From the sequence record OK905446.1: a stretch of 64,000 nt of DNA, one strand, 5' to 3'. How positions within the stretch are numbered: position 1 is the stretch's first letter; every line of letters begins with the position of its first letter. The translations under genes and the position numbers were made by a program. Below are positions 30,289 through 60,042 of the stretch, piece by piece. Under the pieces are notes generated by a model, which saw only the letters and a list, made by a program, of their open reading frames with translations, did no database searches and was not told where the DNA came from.

Positions 30289-31329
30289 CTAGTAAGCACC
30301 TAGCATTTCTTTCATTTCTTCGTCCGTCATTGTACACGGGAAGTAGAATTCGTCAAGATAATCATCGTACCACATGTAGAATTGAGCTACTAAATCTGGT
30401 GTATGATTCGGAAGTGACGTTGTAGCTTTTGCATTTTCAAGCTTCTCAAGGCGTTCTTGCAGCACTTCAGAGACGTATTCCCACGTGTACTTACCGATTT
30501 TAACGTCACGATAGAATGCAGCGTGCTTCAATGGGAACTCAAGCTTACCAACTTCAAGGATGTCGATTGCTTGATCGATTACTCGCATAGCATGAGAGAT
30601 CGCTTTCCAGTCTGAACCACTAGCAGCACGAGCTTGATACGAACGCGCACCGTATTTGCTCATCATCTTCTCAAGACGACCAGCCGCTTCTTCAAATGAG
30701 ATTTCAAGACCGAATACCTTTTCAAGCACACTGAACGCAGGGTCTTGCAAATCGCTTGCGTCTGTAGTCTTGGGCCCGTGATACCACTGAAAACGCACGT
30801 GAGCGTCTTCTGCGCTTAGTTCCCATAGACGTTGACACAACTCAGGGCTTGAACCCAACTTCGCTTTAGAATCGACGTTGTGCGTCTCTACAGCACGTGC
30901 AAATTCCATAAGGCTGTTTAGTCGTGTACCTTTGATACCGTATTTCTGCGCTTGGTTCAGTGCATAACCCGTCATTGCTTTGACGTTTGATGTCAAGTAT
31001 TTGCGCGTTAGCTCTTGACACATAGCATGGAACGTAGGGTGACAGTCATCTGGGTTCTGTAGTGCGTTGAATGCTAACTCGATAGCATACGACTGACCAC
31101 CTAGAAAGTCGCGCATGAACACTTGAACAGGGATGTATTCGAAGTCTTCATCTTCAGCGCCGTTCTTCGAGAACGCTTTACCAGTTGAATGAACTGAGTT
31201 CTTGATTGCAACACCACGCAATAGTGTACGCAACTCTGGTAAGAAGACAGCTTTGTAATCAGTATCTGACTCTGGCGTGTCTGTGCCATATAGTTTTGAA
31301 CCGAATAGGCTCGTGTATAGTACATTCAT
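30289..31329 (-). CDS. DNA Pol-beta-superfamily nucleotidyltransferase (T4 NrdC.11/RlaP-like)
   Basis: LFGSKLYGTDTPESDTDYKAVF; DWKAISHAMR. Confidence 0.8.
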   Translation of the reverse strand: MNVLYTSLFGSKLYGTDTPESDTDYKAVFLPELRTLLRGVAIKNSVHSTGKAFSKNGAEDEDFEYIPVQVFMRDFLGGQSYAIELAFNALQNPDDCHPTFHAMCQELTRKYLTSNVKAMTGYALNQAQKYGIKGTRLNSLMEFARAVETHNVDSKAKLGSSPELCQRLWELSAEDAHVRFQWYHGPKTTDASDLQDPAFSVLEKVFGLEISFEEAAGRLEKMMSKYGARSYQARAASGSDWKAISHAMRVIDQAIDILEVGKLEFPLKHAAFYRDVKIGKYTWEYVSEVLQERLEKLENAKATTSLPNHTPDLVAQFYMWYDDYLDEFYFPCTMTDEEMKEMLGAY

Positions 31330-31802
31330 AGACCACCTCGTGATGCTTGCATGGCAACGTAGATACGTTTGCCAAATGGTTTAGCGATTGATTCTAGAAT
31401 ATCAACGATGTTATGACCTAGAATCGGTGAAACGTGTTCAATAAAGATGTGTTCACGCTCTTGAGCACACGCAAACGCAACTGAAGAGATAAGAGACTCA
31501 AGATCTAACCCGCTTTGAATAACGAGTGAACCCTCACCAAGTTTTGCTGCCATTTCAGTGTGGCGTTGCTCAGTCACAATCATAGTGCTTTCTCGTACGC
31601 CACGCTGAACGAGCATTCCCATCAGCATAGCGTTCTTGCCACTCCCAGGTCTACCAACAACAACTGTGCTGTCTGAGCCATTGAAGATTTGCAATTCAGA
31701 AACTACTGTCTTCGCGGCGCGAATTAACGATTTTGGAGTCATTTTATACACCTTTTGTTGGATTTTTGAACGTTTCGTCTTTATATGCTGTATGATACGC
31801 AT
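31326..31802 (-). CDS. short P-loop NTPase-like protein
   Basis: VVVGRPGSGKN Walker A; RecA/DnaB-like topology suspected. Confidence 0.6.
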   Translation of the reverse strand: MRIIQHIKTKRSKIQQKVYKMTPKSLIRAAKTVVSELQIFNGSDSTVVVGRPGSGKNAMLMGMLVQRGVRESTMIVTEQRHTEMAAKLGEGSLVIQSGLDLESLISSVAFACAQEREHIFIEHVSPILGHNIVDILESIAKPFGKRIYVAMQASRGGL

Positions 31803-31873
31803 ATTTTACACTTTAGTCAACAATTATTTCAGATTTTTATTGAGATAATTGCTATGCAACACGTAACAAAACA

Positions 31874-32005
31874 CTAAATAAGATAGAGACATTTTACAGT
31901 TTCGAGGGATGTGACTATGTTATCGCATTGGTCACTGCGAGTATTGGTTCTACTATAGTCGCCTCCCTCGCTTTTTAATTTCAAAGGGGCATTTCTGCCC
32001 CTTTT
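31874..32005 (+). ncRNA. candidate structured late antisense RNA
   Basis: CTAAATA box, 16-bp long stem enclosing two hairpins, U-run and bidirectional terminator; no long ORF. Confidence 0.45.
31983..32005. terminator. bidirectional terminator
   Basis: AAAGGGGCA-TTTC-TGCCCCTTTT. Confidence 0.75.
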
Positions 32006-32006
32006 C

Positions 32007-32585
32007 TTATCGTCTCTTCTTACCAAACTTCATCTTAAACCCACTCGATTTCTTCTTAGGCTTCGGCTTAGACAGAACTTTCTTTGGCTTTTCTACTTTC
32101 TTGACTGTAGTAGGCTTCTTGTTCTTCAACTCAGTAGACTTTTTCGGCTCTACTTTCTTCACTTCAACAGGTTTCACGGGAGCTACTGGCTCTACTTTCT
32201 TGATTACAGGCGCAGTTTTTGTCTGATACGGTGTCACTTTGTTGATAATTGGTGCTTGAGTTGGTGCAATGTAGTTCTTTTTACCGGAATCAAAGACATC
32301 ATCTACAATCTCTGCCGCCACAAAACCAATTGCTGCCGCACCCCAATCGAATCCCTCATCTTCAGATTGATGAATCACAACTGGCGCTTGTTGTACAGGT
32401 TGTTGTACAACTTCTTGTACATTATTCACTGGCGGAAAGTCATCGACCGTTGGCGCTTGCATTAGCGGCTGACCTTGCTCGGCATAGTATGCGTTTGTGT
32501 CTAGAGTAGCAGAGCCATTATCACAGCCCGCCAGTACTGCAATCATACTAACGATTGCGATTGTGCGAATTTTCATTTTATACAC
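32007..32585 (-). CDS. lipoprotein with Lys/Pro-rich tail
   Basis: Lipobox VLAGC. Confidence 0.7.
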   Translation of the reverse strand: MYKMKIRTIAIVSMIAVLAGCDNGSATLDTNAYYAEQGQPLMQAPTVDDFPPVNNVQEVVQQPVQQAPVVIHQSEDEGFDWGAAAIGFVAAEIVDDVFDSGKKNYIAPTQAPIINKVTPYQTKTAPVIKKVEPVAPVKPVEVKKVEPKKSTELKNKKPTTVKKVEKPKKVLSKPKPKKKSSGFKMKFGKKRR

Positions 32586-33243
32586 CTTTAAAGTTATCGT
32601 AAAATGCTTTTGCTTCTGGCTTATGTAAGAAAGTATGCCAACGAAGTGCAGCTACATCCGTTTCGACGTTGCGCTCATTGATTGCAACTACATAGCGACC
32701 GCTATCATCTTTACCAAACGTGATGATGCATTCCATGTCACCATTAGTGTCCATCTTCTGCTCGATTTGCTGATCAATACCGTGAGCTTCTTCGCTGAAG
32801 ACAACAGTCTGGTCAATACCAAGAAACTTCTCGATACGGTCAAGCTTCTGAAATGAAGCGTCACCTTGTGTCTTTAACACGCGATTCTGAATGCTCTTGT
32901 CGAACTTCGAATACATCCAAGCATTAGCAATACCGATATTCATACCAATCAGAGACGCACCGACAACAAACATCGAGCCAATCACGATTCGACCACCTGT
33001 AGTAACAGGATAATGATCACCAAAACCGATTGTGCTCATAGCCATCCACACAGTCCAGAATGCATCACCTGGCGTTTTGATGTTGGCAGTTACGTCATTC
33101 ACTTCGAACGCAAACAGAATATTTGATGCTACTAATGCTATTGACATAGACACTGCTATAATCAAAGAGAATATTAGCAGCATATTGTACTGCACAACAC
33201 CATGTTCGTCGTATGACTTAATGTGTTTCTTCAATCGTTTCAT
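32578..33243 (-). CDS. KcsA-like potassium channel
   Basis: TM-pore-TM; DAFWTVWMAMSTIGFGDHYPVT..GR filter. Confidence 0.85.
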   Translation of the reverse strand: MKRLKKHIKSYDEHGVVQYNMLLIFSLIIAVSMSIALVASNILFAFEVNDVTANIKTPGDAFWTVWMAMSTIGFGDHYPVTTGGRIVIGSMFVVGASLIGMNIGIANAWMYSKFDKSIQNRVLKTQGDASFQKLDRIEKFLGIDQTVVFSEEAHGIDQQIEQKMDTNGDMECIITFGKDDSGRYVVAINERNVETDVAALRWHTFLHKPEAKAFYDNFKGV

Positions 33244-33565
33244 GTTGTTCCTCTGGCAAGTGGATGTTGAATTGAAAGTCAGATTTTAGTTCTGCGTAGT
33301 CAATCTCGCTCAGTGAATCCTTGATGAATTTGATTGATGATTTCAATTCACCATACGGCAGAATAACTTGATTTGATTGACAGTACTCGATGTCAAATCG
33401 TTCTACTAACACGTTCATGTGATAGTCACGAAAAACTTGACGCTGAACGCCAGTCATGCATCCGTAAGCGAATGCAAATGCATTGCGATACTCTTGTTGG
33501 TTAACGATAGCTGCATCTTTCTGTTCTACTAGAATTTCGACAGTGCGTAGGTCAGTTGCGTTCAT
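33218..33565 (-). CDS. early hypothetical protein
   Basis: PeSL cassette and conserved RBS upstream. Confidence 0.75.
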   Translation of the reverse strand: MNATDLRTVEILVEQKDAAIVNQQEYRNAFAFAYGCMTGVQRQVFRDYHMNVLVERFDIEYCQSNQVILPYGELKSSIKFIKDSLSEIDYAELKSDFQFNIHLPEEQHETIEETH

Positions 33566-46400: not shown

Positions 46401-47809
46401 TCTTGTTCTTTGAAAGCTGGGAATTCAGCAGTTGTACCGCGACGGATGCGCATAGACGGCAGTCTGTCAACGTAGCTACTGTGCCAACGATCATACGCTT
46501 CGACAGTGTTCACGTCTAACAGCTTATCAAGAACGTCAAGACGACGAATCGCTGACCACTTCTTGAAACCCTCTTGCGGCTCTTTCTTCTCGACTGCACC
46601 ACCGAAGAACGCTGATAAGTCAGCAGCTTTTGGTGTGTTCAAGTCGAACGTCTCAGAGATAATCGCTTGAAAGTTGTTAACTTGAGATAAGATTATACAC
46701 AAATTACAAGCAACTTCAAACACAATATCTTCGTCTGTCATCGTTTCTTTGTCGAGTTCTTTCAGCCACAAGCGTGTTGCGAAATCTTTGAACTCTTCTT
46801 TGCCACGAGGTAACACAGCACCGAATCGACCCCATACTTCGTCGAGCATTTCATCAAGCTCACGAGAAGGCAATTTCTTACCATCTTTGAAGATACCGTG
46901 ACCTGAGATTTTCTTACGACGACCGAGCTTATCTGTGTATTCACGGTTGGTTAAACAACCCGTGTGCGTTGATGAGTCATAGCTAATATGAAATTCATCA
47001 CCGAAATAACCGCTTCTGATAAGAGCTACAGCAGGTAATAGACGTTTAACTGACCCAACACCAAGCATGTGAACTGATTTCTTCGCTTGTTCTGGTATGT
47101 TGAGCTTTGGGATAACGCTCATCATGTCGATTGATTCACGTACGCCATTACCAATACATGTATCGGCAGCAGCACAACCAGCAATGTACTCTTCAACACC
47201 ATCGAGTTGCGACATAATGCCGTCACTGAATGCTTTGAAGTCATCGTCTGAGTTGCCTTGTAAGATGATATACGGCTTGCACTTGCTTTCAGTTGCGATA
47301 TACGTCTCAATCTGTGCGCGAATGTTCTTGCCAGTCTTGACCCCGTACTTGTACGCTAGATCATACATGAAAACTTTATCTTTCGTGTTGATACGAGCCG
47401 CGCCGCCGCCTTTTGCTTCATTGTGCAGCGGGATTTCATCGAAGCACATACCAATATCACCAGACTCTGCTTGATTCTCGTAAACTGCCTTACGAAGCTC
47501 TGGTGTGTTGTCTAAACCCAAGTTGACAATCTGAAGACCGCCAGAATCGACGTGTACTTTGTACACAGAATCACCGAACAAATCATTAATTTGATGACCG
47601 ACTTTCTTCTCAGTATATGCGTTGTACAGCATACTGATTTTGTGAACACCATCTAGGTCTTGTGCTGCGTCTAGAATTTTACGCAGATAGGACGTGTCAA
47701 CCACGCCCATTAGTTTATGTGCTGCACCAAGACGAGCGTGACCCGTCGCAGACATAACGTATTCAATGATCAATGTGAACCTCGTCTTAAAAATTATAAA
47801 TATTAACAC
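46397..47809 (-). CDS. dpdA: TGT-fold guanine transglycosylase, probably DNA-acting DpdA(2)-like (true start probably 47773 or 47755)
   Basis: VDSGGLQ, FDEIP, ILQGN, HMLGVG, YDSS motifs; no CxCxxC zinc site of tRNA TGT; inside que cluster. Confidence 0.65.
   Translation of the reverse strand: MLIFIIFKTRFTLIIEYVMSATGHARLGAAHKLMGVVDTSYLRKILDAAQDLDGVHKISMLYNAYTEKKVGHQINDLFGDSVYKVHVDSGGLQIVNLGLDNTPELRKAVYENQAESGDIGMCFDEIPLHNEAKGGGAARINTKDKVFMYDLAYKYGVKTGKNIRAQIETYIATESKCKPYIILQGNSDDDFKAFSDGIMSQLDGVEEYIAGCAAADTCIGNGVRESIDMMSVIPKLNIPEQAKKSVHMLGVGSVKRLLPAVALIRSGYFGDEFHISYDSSTHTGCLTNREYTDKLGRRKKISGHGIFKDGKKLPSRELDEMLDEVWGRFGAVLPRGKEEFKDFATRLWLKELDKETMTDEDIVFEVACNLCIILSQVNNFQAIISETFDLNTPKAADLSAFFGGAVEKKEPQEGFKKWSAIRRLDVLDKLLDVNTVEAYDRWHSSYVDRLPSMRIRRGTTAEFPAFKEQE
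47795..47802 (+). promoter_or_regulatory. late promoter of HNH endonuclease
   Basis: Exact TATAAATA. Confidence 0.75.
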
Positions 47810-47835
47810 AGTAATGCTTATTTAAAGAGAGTACA

Positions 47836-48537
47836 ATGTTAACACACGACAATCTTATACTAAACAAATACACAAAATGGTACATTTCTCTAATCGAGAA
47901 TCGGATTAAAAACACACCCGACGGCTATAGCGAAAAACATCACATTTTACCTAAATGTGCGGGTGGTAGTGATGAATCACATAACCTAGTGCGCTTGACG
48001 GCTCGTGAGCATTATATAGCTCATTTGCTATTGGCTAAAATGTTCAATGGCAAATTGAAACATCGCCTGAAGTTTGCACTGACAGCATTCAATATGTCGA
48101 ACAGCTCACAGCAACGCGAGTTCAATATGAACTCTAGATTGTTTGAGTCGATGACAAAAGATGCCAGAAAAGATGCTGCAAAGCATCATATAGGTAAGTT
48201 TGCTGCGATATGCATTGCTACTGGTGAAACTGAATACATTCGAGTTGACGACGAACGCTACCTTCGCGGTGAATATGTTGCGAAGAGTAAAGGTGTTCTG
48301 AAGGGCACGACAAAAACTGAAGAACATAAGCGAAAGCTCGCTAAGTCTAAAGTCGGGAGTCAAAACCCGCAATCAAAGTATCTATTTCACACACCAAACG
48401 GGGTGTTTGAGTCGTCTCGATTAGCAGCCGAAGCTAATGATACCACTAATGTGACTGTGTATAACCGATGCGTAAAATACACATCGGCTAAGTTCAAAGA
48501 TTGGTACGTTACGCCTGTGAACGAGCAAGAGACATAA
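47836..48537 (+). mobile_element. free-standing HNH homing endonuclease
   Basis: EKHHILPK..GGSD...NLV.LT.REH..AH.LL; NUMOD3/NUMOD1-like C-terminus; inverted, overlapping the folE 3' end. Confidence 0.85.
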
Positions 48538-52600: not shown

Positions 52601-52885
52601 TTAACCTATAAAATTGTTTAGTGGACTGCTCAATCTATCAAGTTCTTTGAGAATTACATCGCCATGGCATGCTTTTGGCTTACAATGACATCCGAGAATC
52701 TTTCCTTTTAGTTGCATAAATTGCTTTTTAAATTCGTCGTCTTGTAACTGAATGCGCAACCACTCTCGATAAAGCTCTATAACTTCGCTCCGAGTGCCGT
52801 CTATTCCAATTTTAAATGGATTTCCGTACGGGGTGCCGCGACCAATGTACACATCAAAAGAATGATGAGCAATATTGACTAACAT
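52601..52885 (-). CDS. DUF4326-family protein
   Basis: DVYIGRG..YGNPF...LGCHCKP.ACHGDV. Confidence 0.85.
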   Translation of the reverse strand: MLVNIAHHSFDVYIGRGTPYGNPFKIGIDGTRSEVIELYREWLRIQLQDDEFKKQFMQLKGKILGCHCKPKACHGDVILKELDRLSSPLNNFIG

Positions 52886-55487: not shown

Positions 55488-55494
55488 CTAAATA
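55488..55494 (+). promoter_or_regulatory. probable late promoter
   Basis: CTAAATA upstream of plus-strand gene. Confidence 0.6.
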
Positions 55495-55526
55495 AGTAAT
55501 ACAGTCAACCGAATTCGAGAAAAAAG

Positions 55527-56582
55527 ATGATTATTTTTGAAAGCGTTCAATCGCAGCGTGCATTAGAGTACGCATCTAAGTTTATCGTCGATAGACTTGA
55601 GACACAATTAGAAGCTGCTCTAAGTAGCCCACCATTCGACCCAAACAAACTCGCACTTAATACCAAGAATCTGAACATCAAAACTGGTGAAACTGAATTC
55701 GATGCACTTCTTGCACGTGGTATTGTCGCGTATCTTAAATTAGATAACCAAAACCCGACTGAACTCGGCGTATGGCGTGGTGCATTACATGACCCACAAG
55801 CAGGCGAAGCGGGTAACTTGCAAATCACCGTAGACATCACCGGTGTTACTGCGGTTAGCCAGATCATGGCTAAATTTCGAGTCAAGAAAGACCAAATGTA
55901 CAGCACTGCATTGCATGAACTGCAACACGCTTACGATAACTGGCGTTCTGGTGATATAGCAGACTTCGACACTCGCGACGAAGAGGGCGTGTATCAACAC
56001 TCAGGGCGTAATAGAGCTTACATTGATAAAGAGTTCATCCGACACGCTAAAGCCGGTCACAAAGCGTCTCACGACGAATATCAGAACTATTCTCATGAGA
56101 TTAACGCACGATATGCACAAGCAATAGCTGACACTAAGGCACACTTCAAGGGTTCACCTGCTACCACAGAAGCATGGATTATGAATTTCAAGAAGTATTT
56201 TGATGGTTGGTTTAATATACCAGACGACGCGAAGAAGCGATTGCTTGCGCGTGCAGGGGCTGAACATAGCGAATACAAAAAGCCGTTTCACGGCAAAGAA
56301 AGCAGCTTGCTATATGCTCTGAAAGGCTTCGATGTCAAATACACCAGAGATACTAAGTTCAGCAAGATTGGCTATTGGTTCAGTAAATTTGAATACAACG
56401 GTCGAACGTCTGCCGACTTACTTGATCGACTTGAGCTTTTAGCTCACAAAACTGAAGGTGTTGTTGCATTGCCACTTGATGACATTCGCGCTAACCCTGC
56501 TCTCTTTGATGAAATGAAAAGACGCATGAGCAGTGGTGAATGGGATCGAATGGGTGCTAATCACATGATCTACAGACCATAA
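55527..56582 (+). CDS. zincin-like metallopeptidase-domain protein (late, inverted)
   Basis: ALHELQHAYD (HExxH) and downstream YQNYSHEINAR. Confidence 0.7.
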   Translation: MIIFESVQSQRALEYASKFIVDRLETQLEAALSSPPFDPNKLALNTKNLNIKTGETEFDALLARGIVAYLKLDNQNPTELGVWRGALHDPQAGEAGNLQITVDITGVTAVSQIMAKFRVKKDQMYSTALHELQHAYDNWRSGDIADFDTRDEEGVYQHSGRNRAYIDKEFIRHAKAGHKASHDEYQNYSHEINARYAQAIADTKAHFKGSPATTEAWIMNFKKYFDGWFNIPDDAKKRLLARAGAEHSEYKKPFHGKESSLLYALKGFDVKYTRDTKFSKIGYWFSKFEYNGRTSADLLDRLELLAHKTEGVVALPLDDIRANPALFDEMKRRMSSGEWDRMGANHMIYRP

Positions 56583-58567: not shown

Positions 58568-60007
58568 TTATTCTTCGTCTTCGTCTTTGTACTCAGAGAC
58601 ATCAACGCCGTTTTCTTCAGCGATTTCGATTGCTTTTGCTTCAGCAGCGGGACCGAAGTGACCGTTCATGATGTATTCGAAGTTCTCTTCTCGGTAAGCA
58701 TCACCGTGTTGCAGAATTGCTTCAACCGCTTCTTCAGAACCTTCCGAATTGAAGTAGTAGTTCATTGCAGCTTGGCGAACATCTTCGTCATGGTCGTCTA
58801 CTAGCTCTTCAAGACGGTAGCCTTGTTCAGCAACGTAAACACGCTCTTCATAGTCGTCAGAATCATCAATCATGCGATCCCAAATGTCTTCTGCCATCGA
58901 ACGACCGAATTCACCTTCGTAGCGTTTCGCATATGTGATACGTGTATCTGCGTCGTCGTTCTCGATAGCCCAATCCCATGCAGCTTCGCGCACGTCTTCG
59001 TCTGAGTCAAGAACAAGATCCCAGATAGCATAGCCATTTTCAGCAGCTTGCTTACGATGTTCCCAATCACTAGACGTAGCTAGTTTATCACCCATTTCAT
59101 AGTCTGTGCGAAGTACAGCGTTTCGAACGTCTTCATCATCATGGAAAATCAGTTCATCGTGCATCAGACCCCATTCAGCGATACGAACTAGAGTTTGCCA
59201 ATCTGCGTGTTCGATGATCTCATCTTCGCGTCCGTCATTGATCCATGCTTCGATTTGGTATTGTTCAGCATCGTTGATCGTGTCTTCTAGACTCGCTTGA
59301 CCGAACGGTGCATCATAGCTTGATGGGCGTTCATGCTCATTGGTAAGCGTGAATCCAACTGAGCCACTCATTTGCATCAATGCTTGGTTAACGTCGTTGT
59401 CATTCATCGACAGAATTGAGCGAGTCACGTTCTTACGAACAGAACGGAAATCGTTTGCACCTGCGGCAAGACGAGAAAGCCAACGGTCGCTAATGTCAGT
59501 TGAGTAACCGTATTCTTTACCGAACGTCAACGATAGGGCGTAGTAAAGCATAGGACGAGAGATCAAGTCTTTCAATAGCTTTTTCTTGCTTTCTTCGTCT
59601 AAGCGTTGCGCTTCACGACGGTTGTTTTGCAGTGCGTAGTACTCGTGATTCTTAGATAATTCGTACGCCGCGCTGAAGTCATATTCATACGGCTTCATGC
59701 CCATTTCTTCTTCGTACGTCTCGGTGAATTCACGTAGTGTAGTCAAGACGCCAGAAAATACCGCTGCCGCAGAGTGACCCGCACGACCAGTTTGTGAATA
59801 ACCGCCACGGTTTTGGAAAGAAATAGTGAAATAACCAGGGTTGCTTTCGTCTACGTCAACTTTAAATTCTTCGCCAGCAGCATTGAAGCGTGCTGAAGTT
59901 TCGCCAGTTCCGTTCTCATGACCCCAATCCCAATCAATGTCGATATTGGCACGGTCTGAGATTTCGTCAAGACGAACTTCTTGATAAAATTGTTCAAACA
60001 GTTTCAT
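58568..60007 (-). CDS. putative virion-internal acidic protein with HEAT/LRV-like repeats
   Basis: MKLFEQFYQE start; D.DEDVR.AA repeats; late box upstream. Confidence 0.6.
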   Translation of the reverse strand: MKLFEQFYQEVRLDEISDRANIDIDWDWGHENGTGETSARFNAAGEEFKVDVDESNPGYFTISFQNRGGYSQTGRAGHSAAAVFSGVLTTLREFTETYEEEMGMKPYEYDFSAAYELSKNHEYYALQNNRREAQRLDEESKKKLLKDLISRPMLYYALSLTFGKEYGYSTDISDRWLSRLAAGANDFRSVRKNVTRSILSMNDNDVNQALMQMSGSVGFTLTNEHERPSSYDAPFGQASLEDTINDAEQYQIEAWINDGREDEIIEHADWQTLVRIAEWGLMHDELIFHDDEDVRNAVLRTDYEMGDKLATSSDWEHRKQAAENGYAIWDLVLDSDEDVREAAWDWAIENDDADTRITYAKRYEGEFGRSMAEDIWDRMIDDSDDYEERVYVAEQGYRLEELVDDHDEDVRQAAMNYYFNSEGSEEAVEAILQHGDAYREENFEYIMNGHFGPAAEAKAIEIAEENGVDVSEYKDEDEE

Positions 60008-60034
60008 TGTGATACCTTTTAGTGTTGTTTCTTC

Positions 60035-60042
60035 TATTTAGA
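60035..60042 (-). promoter_or_regulatory. probable late promoter
   Basis: TCTAAATA on minus strand after terminator 60050-60076. Confidence 0.6.

Follow-up and report, generated by a model that had tools for sequence, protein, structure and literature searches.

In bacteriophage lambda the pR'-6S RNA-tR' unit, which lies upstream of the lysis and late genes, is the nearest functional analogy for the RNA element described here. In T4-family phages, to our knowledge, the structured regulatory RNAs described so far are, with few exceptions, the classical translational operators, such as the gene 43 operator, a hairpin with a 5-bp stem and an 8-nt loop, and the pseudoknot of the gene 32 leader. 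Small RNAs of the Hfq or ProQ type, in turn, carry a 3' module made up of a stem followed by a U-tail.

The element is located in a window of 64,000 nucleotides, the whole stretch of DNA analysed, taken from sequence record OK905446.1. With the lambda unit, and with leader attenuators in general, it shares the succession of a promoter, a short structured leader, a stem with a U-tract and, in related phages, a gene for a membrane (holin-like) protein reached by read-through only. It differs from the lambda unit in that no antiterminator fold, Q-like factor or qut-like site was found, while transcription is predicted to start at a late promoter of the T4 gp55 type, the hairpin extends over 68 nt with an apical module of invariant sequence, and termination is a prediction.

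Its small hairpin resembles the T4 gene 43 operator, as both belong to T4-family phages and consist of a 5-bp stem and an 8-nt sequence-specific loop within a 5' leader, where sequence is kept and not only shape; a small leader hairpin conserved in sequence is the pattern expected of a protein-binding operator. Unlike the T4 operators, the hairpin is not located beside a Shine-Dalgarno sequence but 25-50 nt upstream, within a long stem; the product encoded downstream is a membrane protein, unlikely to bind RNA, and no sequence similarity to these operators is known. The cis-acting antiterminator RNAs of phages, such as HK022 put, and the Hfq- or ProQ-type small RNAs are likewise compact structured RNAs placed right after a promoter, or ending in a stem with a U-tail. 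The second stem-loop of the element is not conserved; binding of polymerase or of a chaperone is hypothetical for the element, and no target was found in the window or in five phage genomes. The element represents a new RNA family, although its general kind, that of structured phage leader or terminator RNAs, is familiar; unusual is the existence of a natural orphaned copy.

Genomic location and features of the element

Over the region 31000-33000 the window matches Vibrio phage VS1, a KVP40-like phage of the Straboviridae, with 100% identity. Over the same region vB_VspM_VS2 and QD01 are 95-97% identical, and KVP40 and other schizo-T4 vibriophages about 80%. Nearly all genes of the window are encoded on the minus strand. 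The element falls within a 264-nt gap, between the stop of the minus-strand gene at 32007-32585 and the start, at 31742, of a minus-strand gene for a P-loop protein. Two genes away, the minus-strand gene at 32578-33243 encodes a potassium-channel-like protein, annotated in relatives as a cAMP-dependent Kef-type K+ transporter; its homologue in the metagenomic contig L030 matches Pfam Ion_trans_2.

All the sequence features reported in an initial annotation, which had been made from the letters of the window, were found in place. The features of the locus are the following:

31326-31742, minus strand: gene for a P-loop protein, behind the divergent sigma70-like promoter
31792-31820, minus strand: divergent early-type (sigma70-like) promoter TTGACT-17-TATCAT, 10 of 12 consensus matches
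31874-31880, plus strand: CTAAATA late-promoter box (T4-type, -12 to -6), invariant in seven of seven lineages
31903-31909, plus strand: 5' strand of helix P1a, CGAGGGA, pairing with 31964-31970; compensatory double changes in four of six model pairs
31911-31918, plus strand: 5' strand of helix P1b, GTGACTAT, pairing with 31955-31962; U.G wobble 31912/31961 in six of seven lineages
31923-31940, plus strand: hairpin P2, with a 5-bp stem TCGCA/TGCGA (31923-27 with 31936-40) and the 8-nt loop TTGGTCAC; GGTCAC (31930-31935) invariant
31941-31954, plus strand: 3' junction or internal loop, holding a weak second hairpin (31941-31953)
31955-31970, plus strand: 3' strands of P1b (31955-31962) and P1a (31964-31970)
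31971-31976, plus strand: C followed by a U5 tract, a terminator-like 3' end directly after P1
31983-32005, both strands: bidirectional intrinsic terminator AAA-GGGGCA-TTTC-TGCCCC-TTTT (AAAGGGGCA-TTTC-TGCCCCTTTT), common to the convergent gene at 32007-32585 (minus strand)

The early promoter, from which the late box had been described as divergent, is thus the sigma70-like sequence read on the minus strand from 31820 to 31792; its -35 region is kept in KVP40 and D482. The CTTTTT described at the end of the long stem is present at 31971-31976, and the bidirectional terminator said to follow it corresponds to the hairpin at 31983-32005. Counterparts of this terminator are located 3' of the phrog_14713 gene, discussed below, in KVP40, nt-1 and D482.

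A conserved late-promoter box

The plus-strand CTAAATA, already indicated as a promoter box in the initial annotation, is found in all seven lineages compared, at a distance from P1a which varies between 5 and 27 nt. For the schizo-T-even phage Aeh1 the published late consensus is CTAAATA, beginning at -12 (PMC1524935), and KVP40 late promoters are reported to vary at -13 (PMC2988020). As a reference for T4-type late promoters, a TATAAATA-like box at -13 to -6 was used. On T4 spacing, transcription would start at about 31886; in nt-1 the predicted start would be the very base at which P1a begins. Only four copies of CTAAATA are contained in the 64-kb window, against 8.5 expected, and, of the other three, two are followed, after 26-33 nt, by an ORF in the same orientation, while the third abuts the start of ORF 52601-52885. 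The other copies in the window also behave like promoter boxes, and the placement of the motif at the element is that of a T4-type late promoter. No RNA run containing VS1 or KVP40 was found among the 26 runs listed, and a literature search retrieved no transcriptome paper on the KVP40-like phage group.

The two copies found 26-33 nt upstream of ORFs precede conserved genes with no assigned function, phrog_15811 (351 aa) and phrog_13195 (479 aa), which may be late genes, although the region around them otherwise looks early:

55488-56582, plus strand: CTAAATA and phrog_15811 gene (gene start at 55527)
58568-60041, minus strand: CTAAATA and phrog_13195 gene

A canonical T4 late box, TATAAATA (47795-47802), is also present in the window and precedes by 34 nt a gene for a homing endonuclease on the plus strand (phrog_655; 47795-48537 with its box, start at 47836), which sits among minus-strand genes. 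The seg and mob genes of T4 are expressed late and are likewise located among genes of the opposite strand.

Secondary structure

The 68-nt core of the element (31903-31970) folds with an energy of -27.7 kcal/mol (z = -4.1), a value reached by none of 200 shuffled sequences, and when the downstream terminator is added z decreases to -5.7. The fold contains the long stem previously noticed, formed by 31903-31918 and 31955-31970. A single U.C mismatch (31910/31963) separates P1a from P1b, and a single U.G wobble is located at 31912/31961. The first of the two enclosed hairpins that had been described, TCGCA-TTGGTCAC-TGCGA, is found at 31923-31940. A run of at least four U follows the long stem within 0-1 nt in six of seven lineages, whereas in nt-1 (UAUUCUUUU) the interval is 6 nt; the sequence beyond is not alignable.

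The second hairpin (GTA-ttggttc-TAC, 31941-53) has a different status. It shows zero covariation, is absent or gapped in two of seven lineages and is not part of the minimum-energy fold; for these reasons the Y shape initially proposed for the RNA is doubtful, and the data agree better with one long hairpin that has a large internal loop on its 3' side. The same comparison bears on the suggestion that both loops, by starting with UUGGU, share a unit which a decoy RNA might present twice: the first loop reads CGGUCAC in D482 and UGGUCAC (AUGGUC) in L029, so that UUGGU is not a constant feature, and a decoy with two such loops finds no support, the second hairpin being not conserved. The hexamer CAGTTT (31897-31902), directly 5' of P1a, is kept in six of seven lineages and is absent from nt-1, where the promoter abuts the stem.

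Distribution, conservation and covariation

The element was detected in 47 records of Vibrio phages by a sensitive blastn search. For nt-1 the blastn alignment is confined to the 66-nt core, with 94% identity, and the flanks are not alignable. A covariance model, built from four lineages and used to search the complete genomes of five relatives, revealed exactly one plus-strand copy per genome in KVP40, nt-1, QD01, D482 and F86. A seventh, more divergent lineage (L029), a metagenome contig, was obtained by a protein-guided search. Two new lineages came out of a large protein search, L029 with the element and L030 devoid of it, while scans of the IMG/VR and JGI metagenomes with the protein profile retrieved KVP40 itself or nothing. 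Four sequencing runs covering the KVP40 locus correspond to near-identical strains, in which the element is invariant.

Comparison with Rfam, by cmscan of the region 30500-33500 (E <= 10), returned no match in the element or in 31800-32010, so that the search suggested along with the initial annotation led to no known family; ARAGORN found no tRNA or tmRNA. When genome and metagenome collections were scanned for exact occurrences of the core motif, defined by 16 specified bases, only chance matches resulted, mostly in coding DNA, and none of the other GGTCAC hairpins of the window repeats the sequence of the element. The motif therefore appears, on the collections searched, to be confined to KVP40-like vibriophages. 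A 23-nt identity to the P2 hairpin plus junction (CGCATGGTCACTGCGAGTATTGG) was noticed in three metagenome contigs (L253:2508-2530, L174 and L247), which look eukaryotic from their low ORF density and a proline-rich protein; no P1 stem surrounds the match, which was rejected as a copy of the element and judged to be due to chance.

In the alignment of seven lineages, 98.4% of the pair cells hold standard pairs and double changes are found in 8 of 18 pairs. This level of covariation was reached by none of 500 column shuffles, and sliding the partner strand by 1-3 columns leaves 0-2 pairs with double changes; the alignment was fitted by the model, which inflates the covariation counts somewhat, but the changes are plain in the raw sequences. 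P1a occurs as CGAGGG:CCCTCG, TGAGGG:CCCTCA, CGGGAT:ATCCCG and GAGGGAA:TTCTCTC. P1b occurs as GTGACTAT:ATAGTCGC or GTGACCAT:ATGGTCGC, and in L029 it is rewritten, with full compensation, as CUCGG:CCGAG (DNA CTCGG:CCGAG). P2 is TCGCA:TGCGA, replaced in F86 by TCGTT:AGCGA (A-U to U-A, C-G to U.G). Covariation thus supports both the long stem and the first hairpin.

The helices change with compensation, but some blocks stay constant. GGUCAC, in the apical loop of P2, and GCGAGUAUU are invariant in all seven lineages, and the 12-mer GCGAGTATTGGT (RNA GCGAGUAUUGGU; 31937-31948), which covers the 3' strand of P2 and the junction, is identical in six of them; the L029 copy carries one extra T/U (GCGAGTATTTGGT, RNA GCGAGUAUUUGGU). 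Covarying scaffold helices combined with an invariant apical hairpin and strand would be the pattern expected of a site recognised by a protein or an RNA. Between lineages the element is 66-94% identical, compared with 56-75% for flanking CDS and 52-77% for neighbouring intergenic DNA; between KVP40 and nt-1, in particular, identity is 84% for the RNA, 59% for the nucleotides of the downstream CDS and 48% for its protein.

Strand is indicated by two observations. Eleven cells of the alignment are G.U pairs, among them the U.G wobble of P1b shared by six of seven lineages; read on the minus strand, all of them turn into A.C mismatches. Moreover, the plus strand folds better than the minus strand, the difference being 4 kcal/mol for VS1, 11 kcal/mol for L029 and 13 kcal/mol for D482. 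G.U pairs and folding energies thus favour the plus strand. The comparison bears out the initial proposal of a conserved, structured plus-strand RNA placed after a late-type promoter box; the term antisense, which had been attached to it, holds insofar as the strand is opposite to that of the neighbouring genes, but the element overlaps no gene.

The downstream membrane-protein gene and its loss

In relatives of VS1, a plus-strand gene, phrog_14713 (KVP40.0150), starts 10-35 nt after the U-tract of the element. This arrangement is found in KVP40, phi-pp2, VH7D, nt-1, CZ01, D482, D480, 6E35.1a, F86 and L029. By tblastn the gene is present in 44 phage records, corresponding to the 47 which contain the element minus VS1, VS2 and QD01, where tblastn against the phage collection did not find it. 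The encoded protein, 158-188 aa long, contains two transmembrane helices rich in glycine, and its C-terminal half is charged; its matches to Pfam, to a holin family and to LapA, are all below threshold. In all the 44 gene-bearing records the element lies between the promoter and the start codon, as a leader attenuator does, while in VS1 the gene is absent. The distance from the U-tract to the Shine-Dalgarno sequence and start codon is too short for another promoter, and the element is therefore an obligatory 5' leader of a late mRNA in the phages which carry the gene.

According to the identities of flanking genes, VS1, KVP40 and nt-1 form a trichotomy, with VH7D, D482 and F86 outside; the absence of the gene from the VS1 clade therefore represents a loss. 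VS1 keeps the promoter, the leader, the U-tract and six more bases, followed by the same kind of bidirectional terminator. As judged by comparison with the gene-bearing phages, the deletion in VS1, VS2 and QD01 is clean, running from just after the U-tract to the bidirectional terminator. In every relative outside the VS1 clade, a context missed in the initial annotation, the element is the 5' leader of a plus-strand late gene; the VS1 copy is consequently an orphaned leader and did not originate as a free antisense RNA.

VS1, VS2 and QD01 are 1-2% diverged in this region, where about 5 of 268 columns are variable, none of them in the core. Three-taxon distances give the element a branch of about 1% in VS1 and of 8% in both KVP40 and nt-1; for the flanking gene the VS1 branch is about 12%. 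The least-changed copy is therefore the gene-less one of VS1, as expected if the RNA is selected independently, and equally if the deletion is recent.

The lineage devoid of the element, L030 (Logan contig SRR27362841_42468, 159-1140), contains two tandem phrog_14713 paralogues of 144 and 167 aa, located behind a CATAAATA box with an unstructured leader of only about 25 nt. The gene family thus exists also without the RNA element.

Interpretation of the element and alternative explanations

The explanation preferred, with a probability of roughly 0.55, is that the element is a late leader, shaped like a terminator, which has been orphaned and in which the invariant hairpin serves as a recognition site. 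Its ancestral role would be that of obligatory 5' leader for the late gene of the protein with two transmembrane helices. A stable stem which ends 0-1 nt before at least four U in six of seven lineages, and is placed between promoter and gene, reads as a leader terminator; the anatomy of an intrinsic terminator, a stable G+C-rich stem directly followed by a U-tract, is present in the same number of lineages. The long covarying stem (P1a and P1b) and the U-tract adjoining it would thus act as an attenuator, limiting or timing late expression of the phrog_14713 membrane protein. The apical GGUCAC hairpin and the adjoining strand GCGAGUAUUGGU would be the recognition site of a putative protein or RNA, and the bound factor would modulate read-through or stability. 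In VS1 the promoter would then produce just a short non-coding RNA, of about 91 nt (31886-31976) if ending at its own U-tract, or about 121 nt if reading on to the next terminator. Such a terminator would be atypical, being a 68-nt branched hairpin, and the U-tract could instead be an A/U-rich translational enhancer. No mutually exclusive antiterminator fold was found: no alternative structure opens P1a, and the only competing one, fold B described below, leaves P1a intact and is lost in L029. The expression of two phrog_14713 paralogues in L030 from a CATAAATA box without the leader also counts against an orphaned leader.

The peptide reading, put forward initially as a type-I-toxin-like mRNA for 13 aa with Shine-Dalgarno, start and stop buried in the stem, is close to nil in probability. 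The ORF MLSHWSLRVLVLL* is present in VS1 as described, with a GAGGGA box 7 nt upstream; what falls is its meaning as a peptide, because the comparative data refute it. The frame from ATG to stop is one in VS1, another in KVP40 and nt-1 (..RIGHCEYW..) and a third in F86 and L029 (..VTASI..), D482 lacks the ATG, single-base indels occur within the ORF across lineages, and substitutions track base-pairing, not codons. Nor was a convergent promoter found which might provide the antisense partner of a type I toxin, the sole minus-strand promoter (31820-31792) lying downstream and pointing away. Short hypothetical CDSs have been annotated over the element in D482 (D482_0191; L004:1558-1680, minus strand) and D480 (D480_0188; L012:1472-1594, minus strand), and mostly over its upstream leader in F86 (L011:1426-1518, plus strand); their frames are not conserved and they are probably mis-annotations. 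Hardly more probable is a feature acting as DNA or on the minus strand, either a protein-binding palindrome or an extra terminator for the gene at 32007-32585 (minus strand). The inverted repeat does fold on the minus strand of VS1 as well (-23.9 kcal/mol, z = -4.4), but the eleven G.U cells become mismatches there, wobble of six of seven lineages included, the fold is 10-13 kcal/mol weaker in D482 and L029, and on that strand no U-tract follows the stem, while a good terminator is already available upstream. A bistable switch, in which a factor selects between fold A (P1b and P2) and fold B, is unlikely. In fold B, which six lineages can form, GUGACUA, containing the GUGAC of the 5' strand of P1b, would pair with the P2 loop UUGGUCAC, and GCGA, from the 3' strand of P2, with UCGC of the 3' strand of P1b. 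The two folds are within 0.5 kcal/mol in five of the six lineages first compared, while in randomised sequences preserving fold A the gap is 7-11 kcal/mol, the natural value being reached by 1% of them at most; pairing is possible throughout the fold-B helices (100%), a compensatory change being seen once, in D482, and the conserved U.G wobble would be explained, as that G pairs with C in fold B. Yet most fold-B pairs never vary, and so carry no evidence, the gap is 2 kcal/mol in F86, and P1a is kept in both folds, leaving no obvious difference in output. Furthermore L029 has replaced GUGAC:GUCGC by CUCGG:CCGAG while keeping GGUCAC, which makes fold B impossible (a gap of 14.3 kcal/mol); bistability cannot then be the reason for the conservation of the loop.

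A trans-acting late small RNA is a possible, though distinctly weaker, alternative. The main product in all these phages would be an RNA of about 70-90 nt, ending at its own hairpin and U-tail, whose single-stranded GGUCAC and GAGUAUUGGU would be seeds or protein-binding sites directed to host or phage targets; the downstream gene would be expressed only by read-through, and its loss in VS1 would have left the role of the RNA unaffected. The required anatomy is there, with P1 followed by U5, GGUCAC and GAGUAUU invariant and unpaired, and the junction GAGUAUUGGU kept in six lineages, and the stem with U-tail is like the 3' module of Hfq- or ProQ-type small RNAs. The element is also more conserved than the protein encoded downstream, as the KVP40 and nt-1 values show, and promoter, structure and U-tail are wholly kept in the three gene-less phages, with the short VS1 branch (about 1%, compared with 8% in gene-bearing lineages and about 12% in flanking CDS). 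The VS1 copy shows no decay, which fits continued selection without the gene and favours a small RNA unless the deletion is recent; the three phages being only 1-2% diverged, retention may reflect just such a recent event. Outside the VS1 clade, moreover, the element never occurs away from the gene, and complements of the conserved 10-mer, as would be expected at phage targets, show no excess over controls in the window or in five phage genomes. A bolder variant, rather improbable, would see here a new class of self-acting phage regulatory RNA, a late transcript of about 90 nt in which the GGUCAC loop and GAGUAUUGGU capture a host or phage factor, and which has two folds of equal energy in most lineages; the captured factor might, as a speculation, be the ACCA 3' ends of tRNAs, through two UGGU motifs. 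If this were true, VS1 would be a natural experiment, in which the RNA is selected without the downstream gene.

Significance

The leader described here is an RNA motif supported by covariation and without an Rfam match, which is present as one copy in each complete genome searched and is more conserved than the protein genes surrounding it. Its position suggests that expression of a late membrane protein is controlled after initiation in these phages. VS1, VS2 and QD01, which keep the promoter and the RNA without the gene, provide a natural deletion test of the function of the RNA itself.
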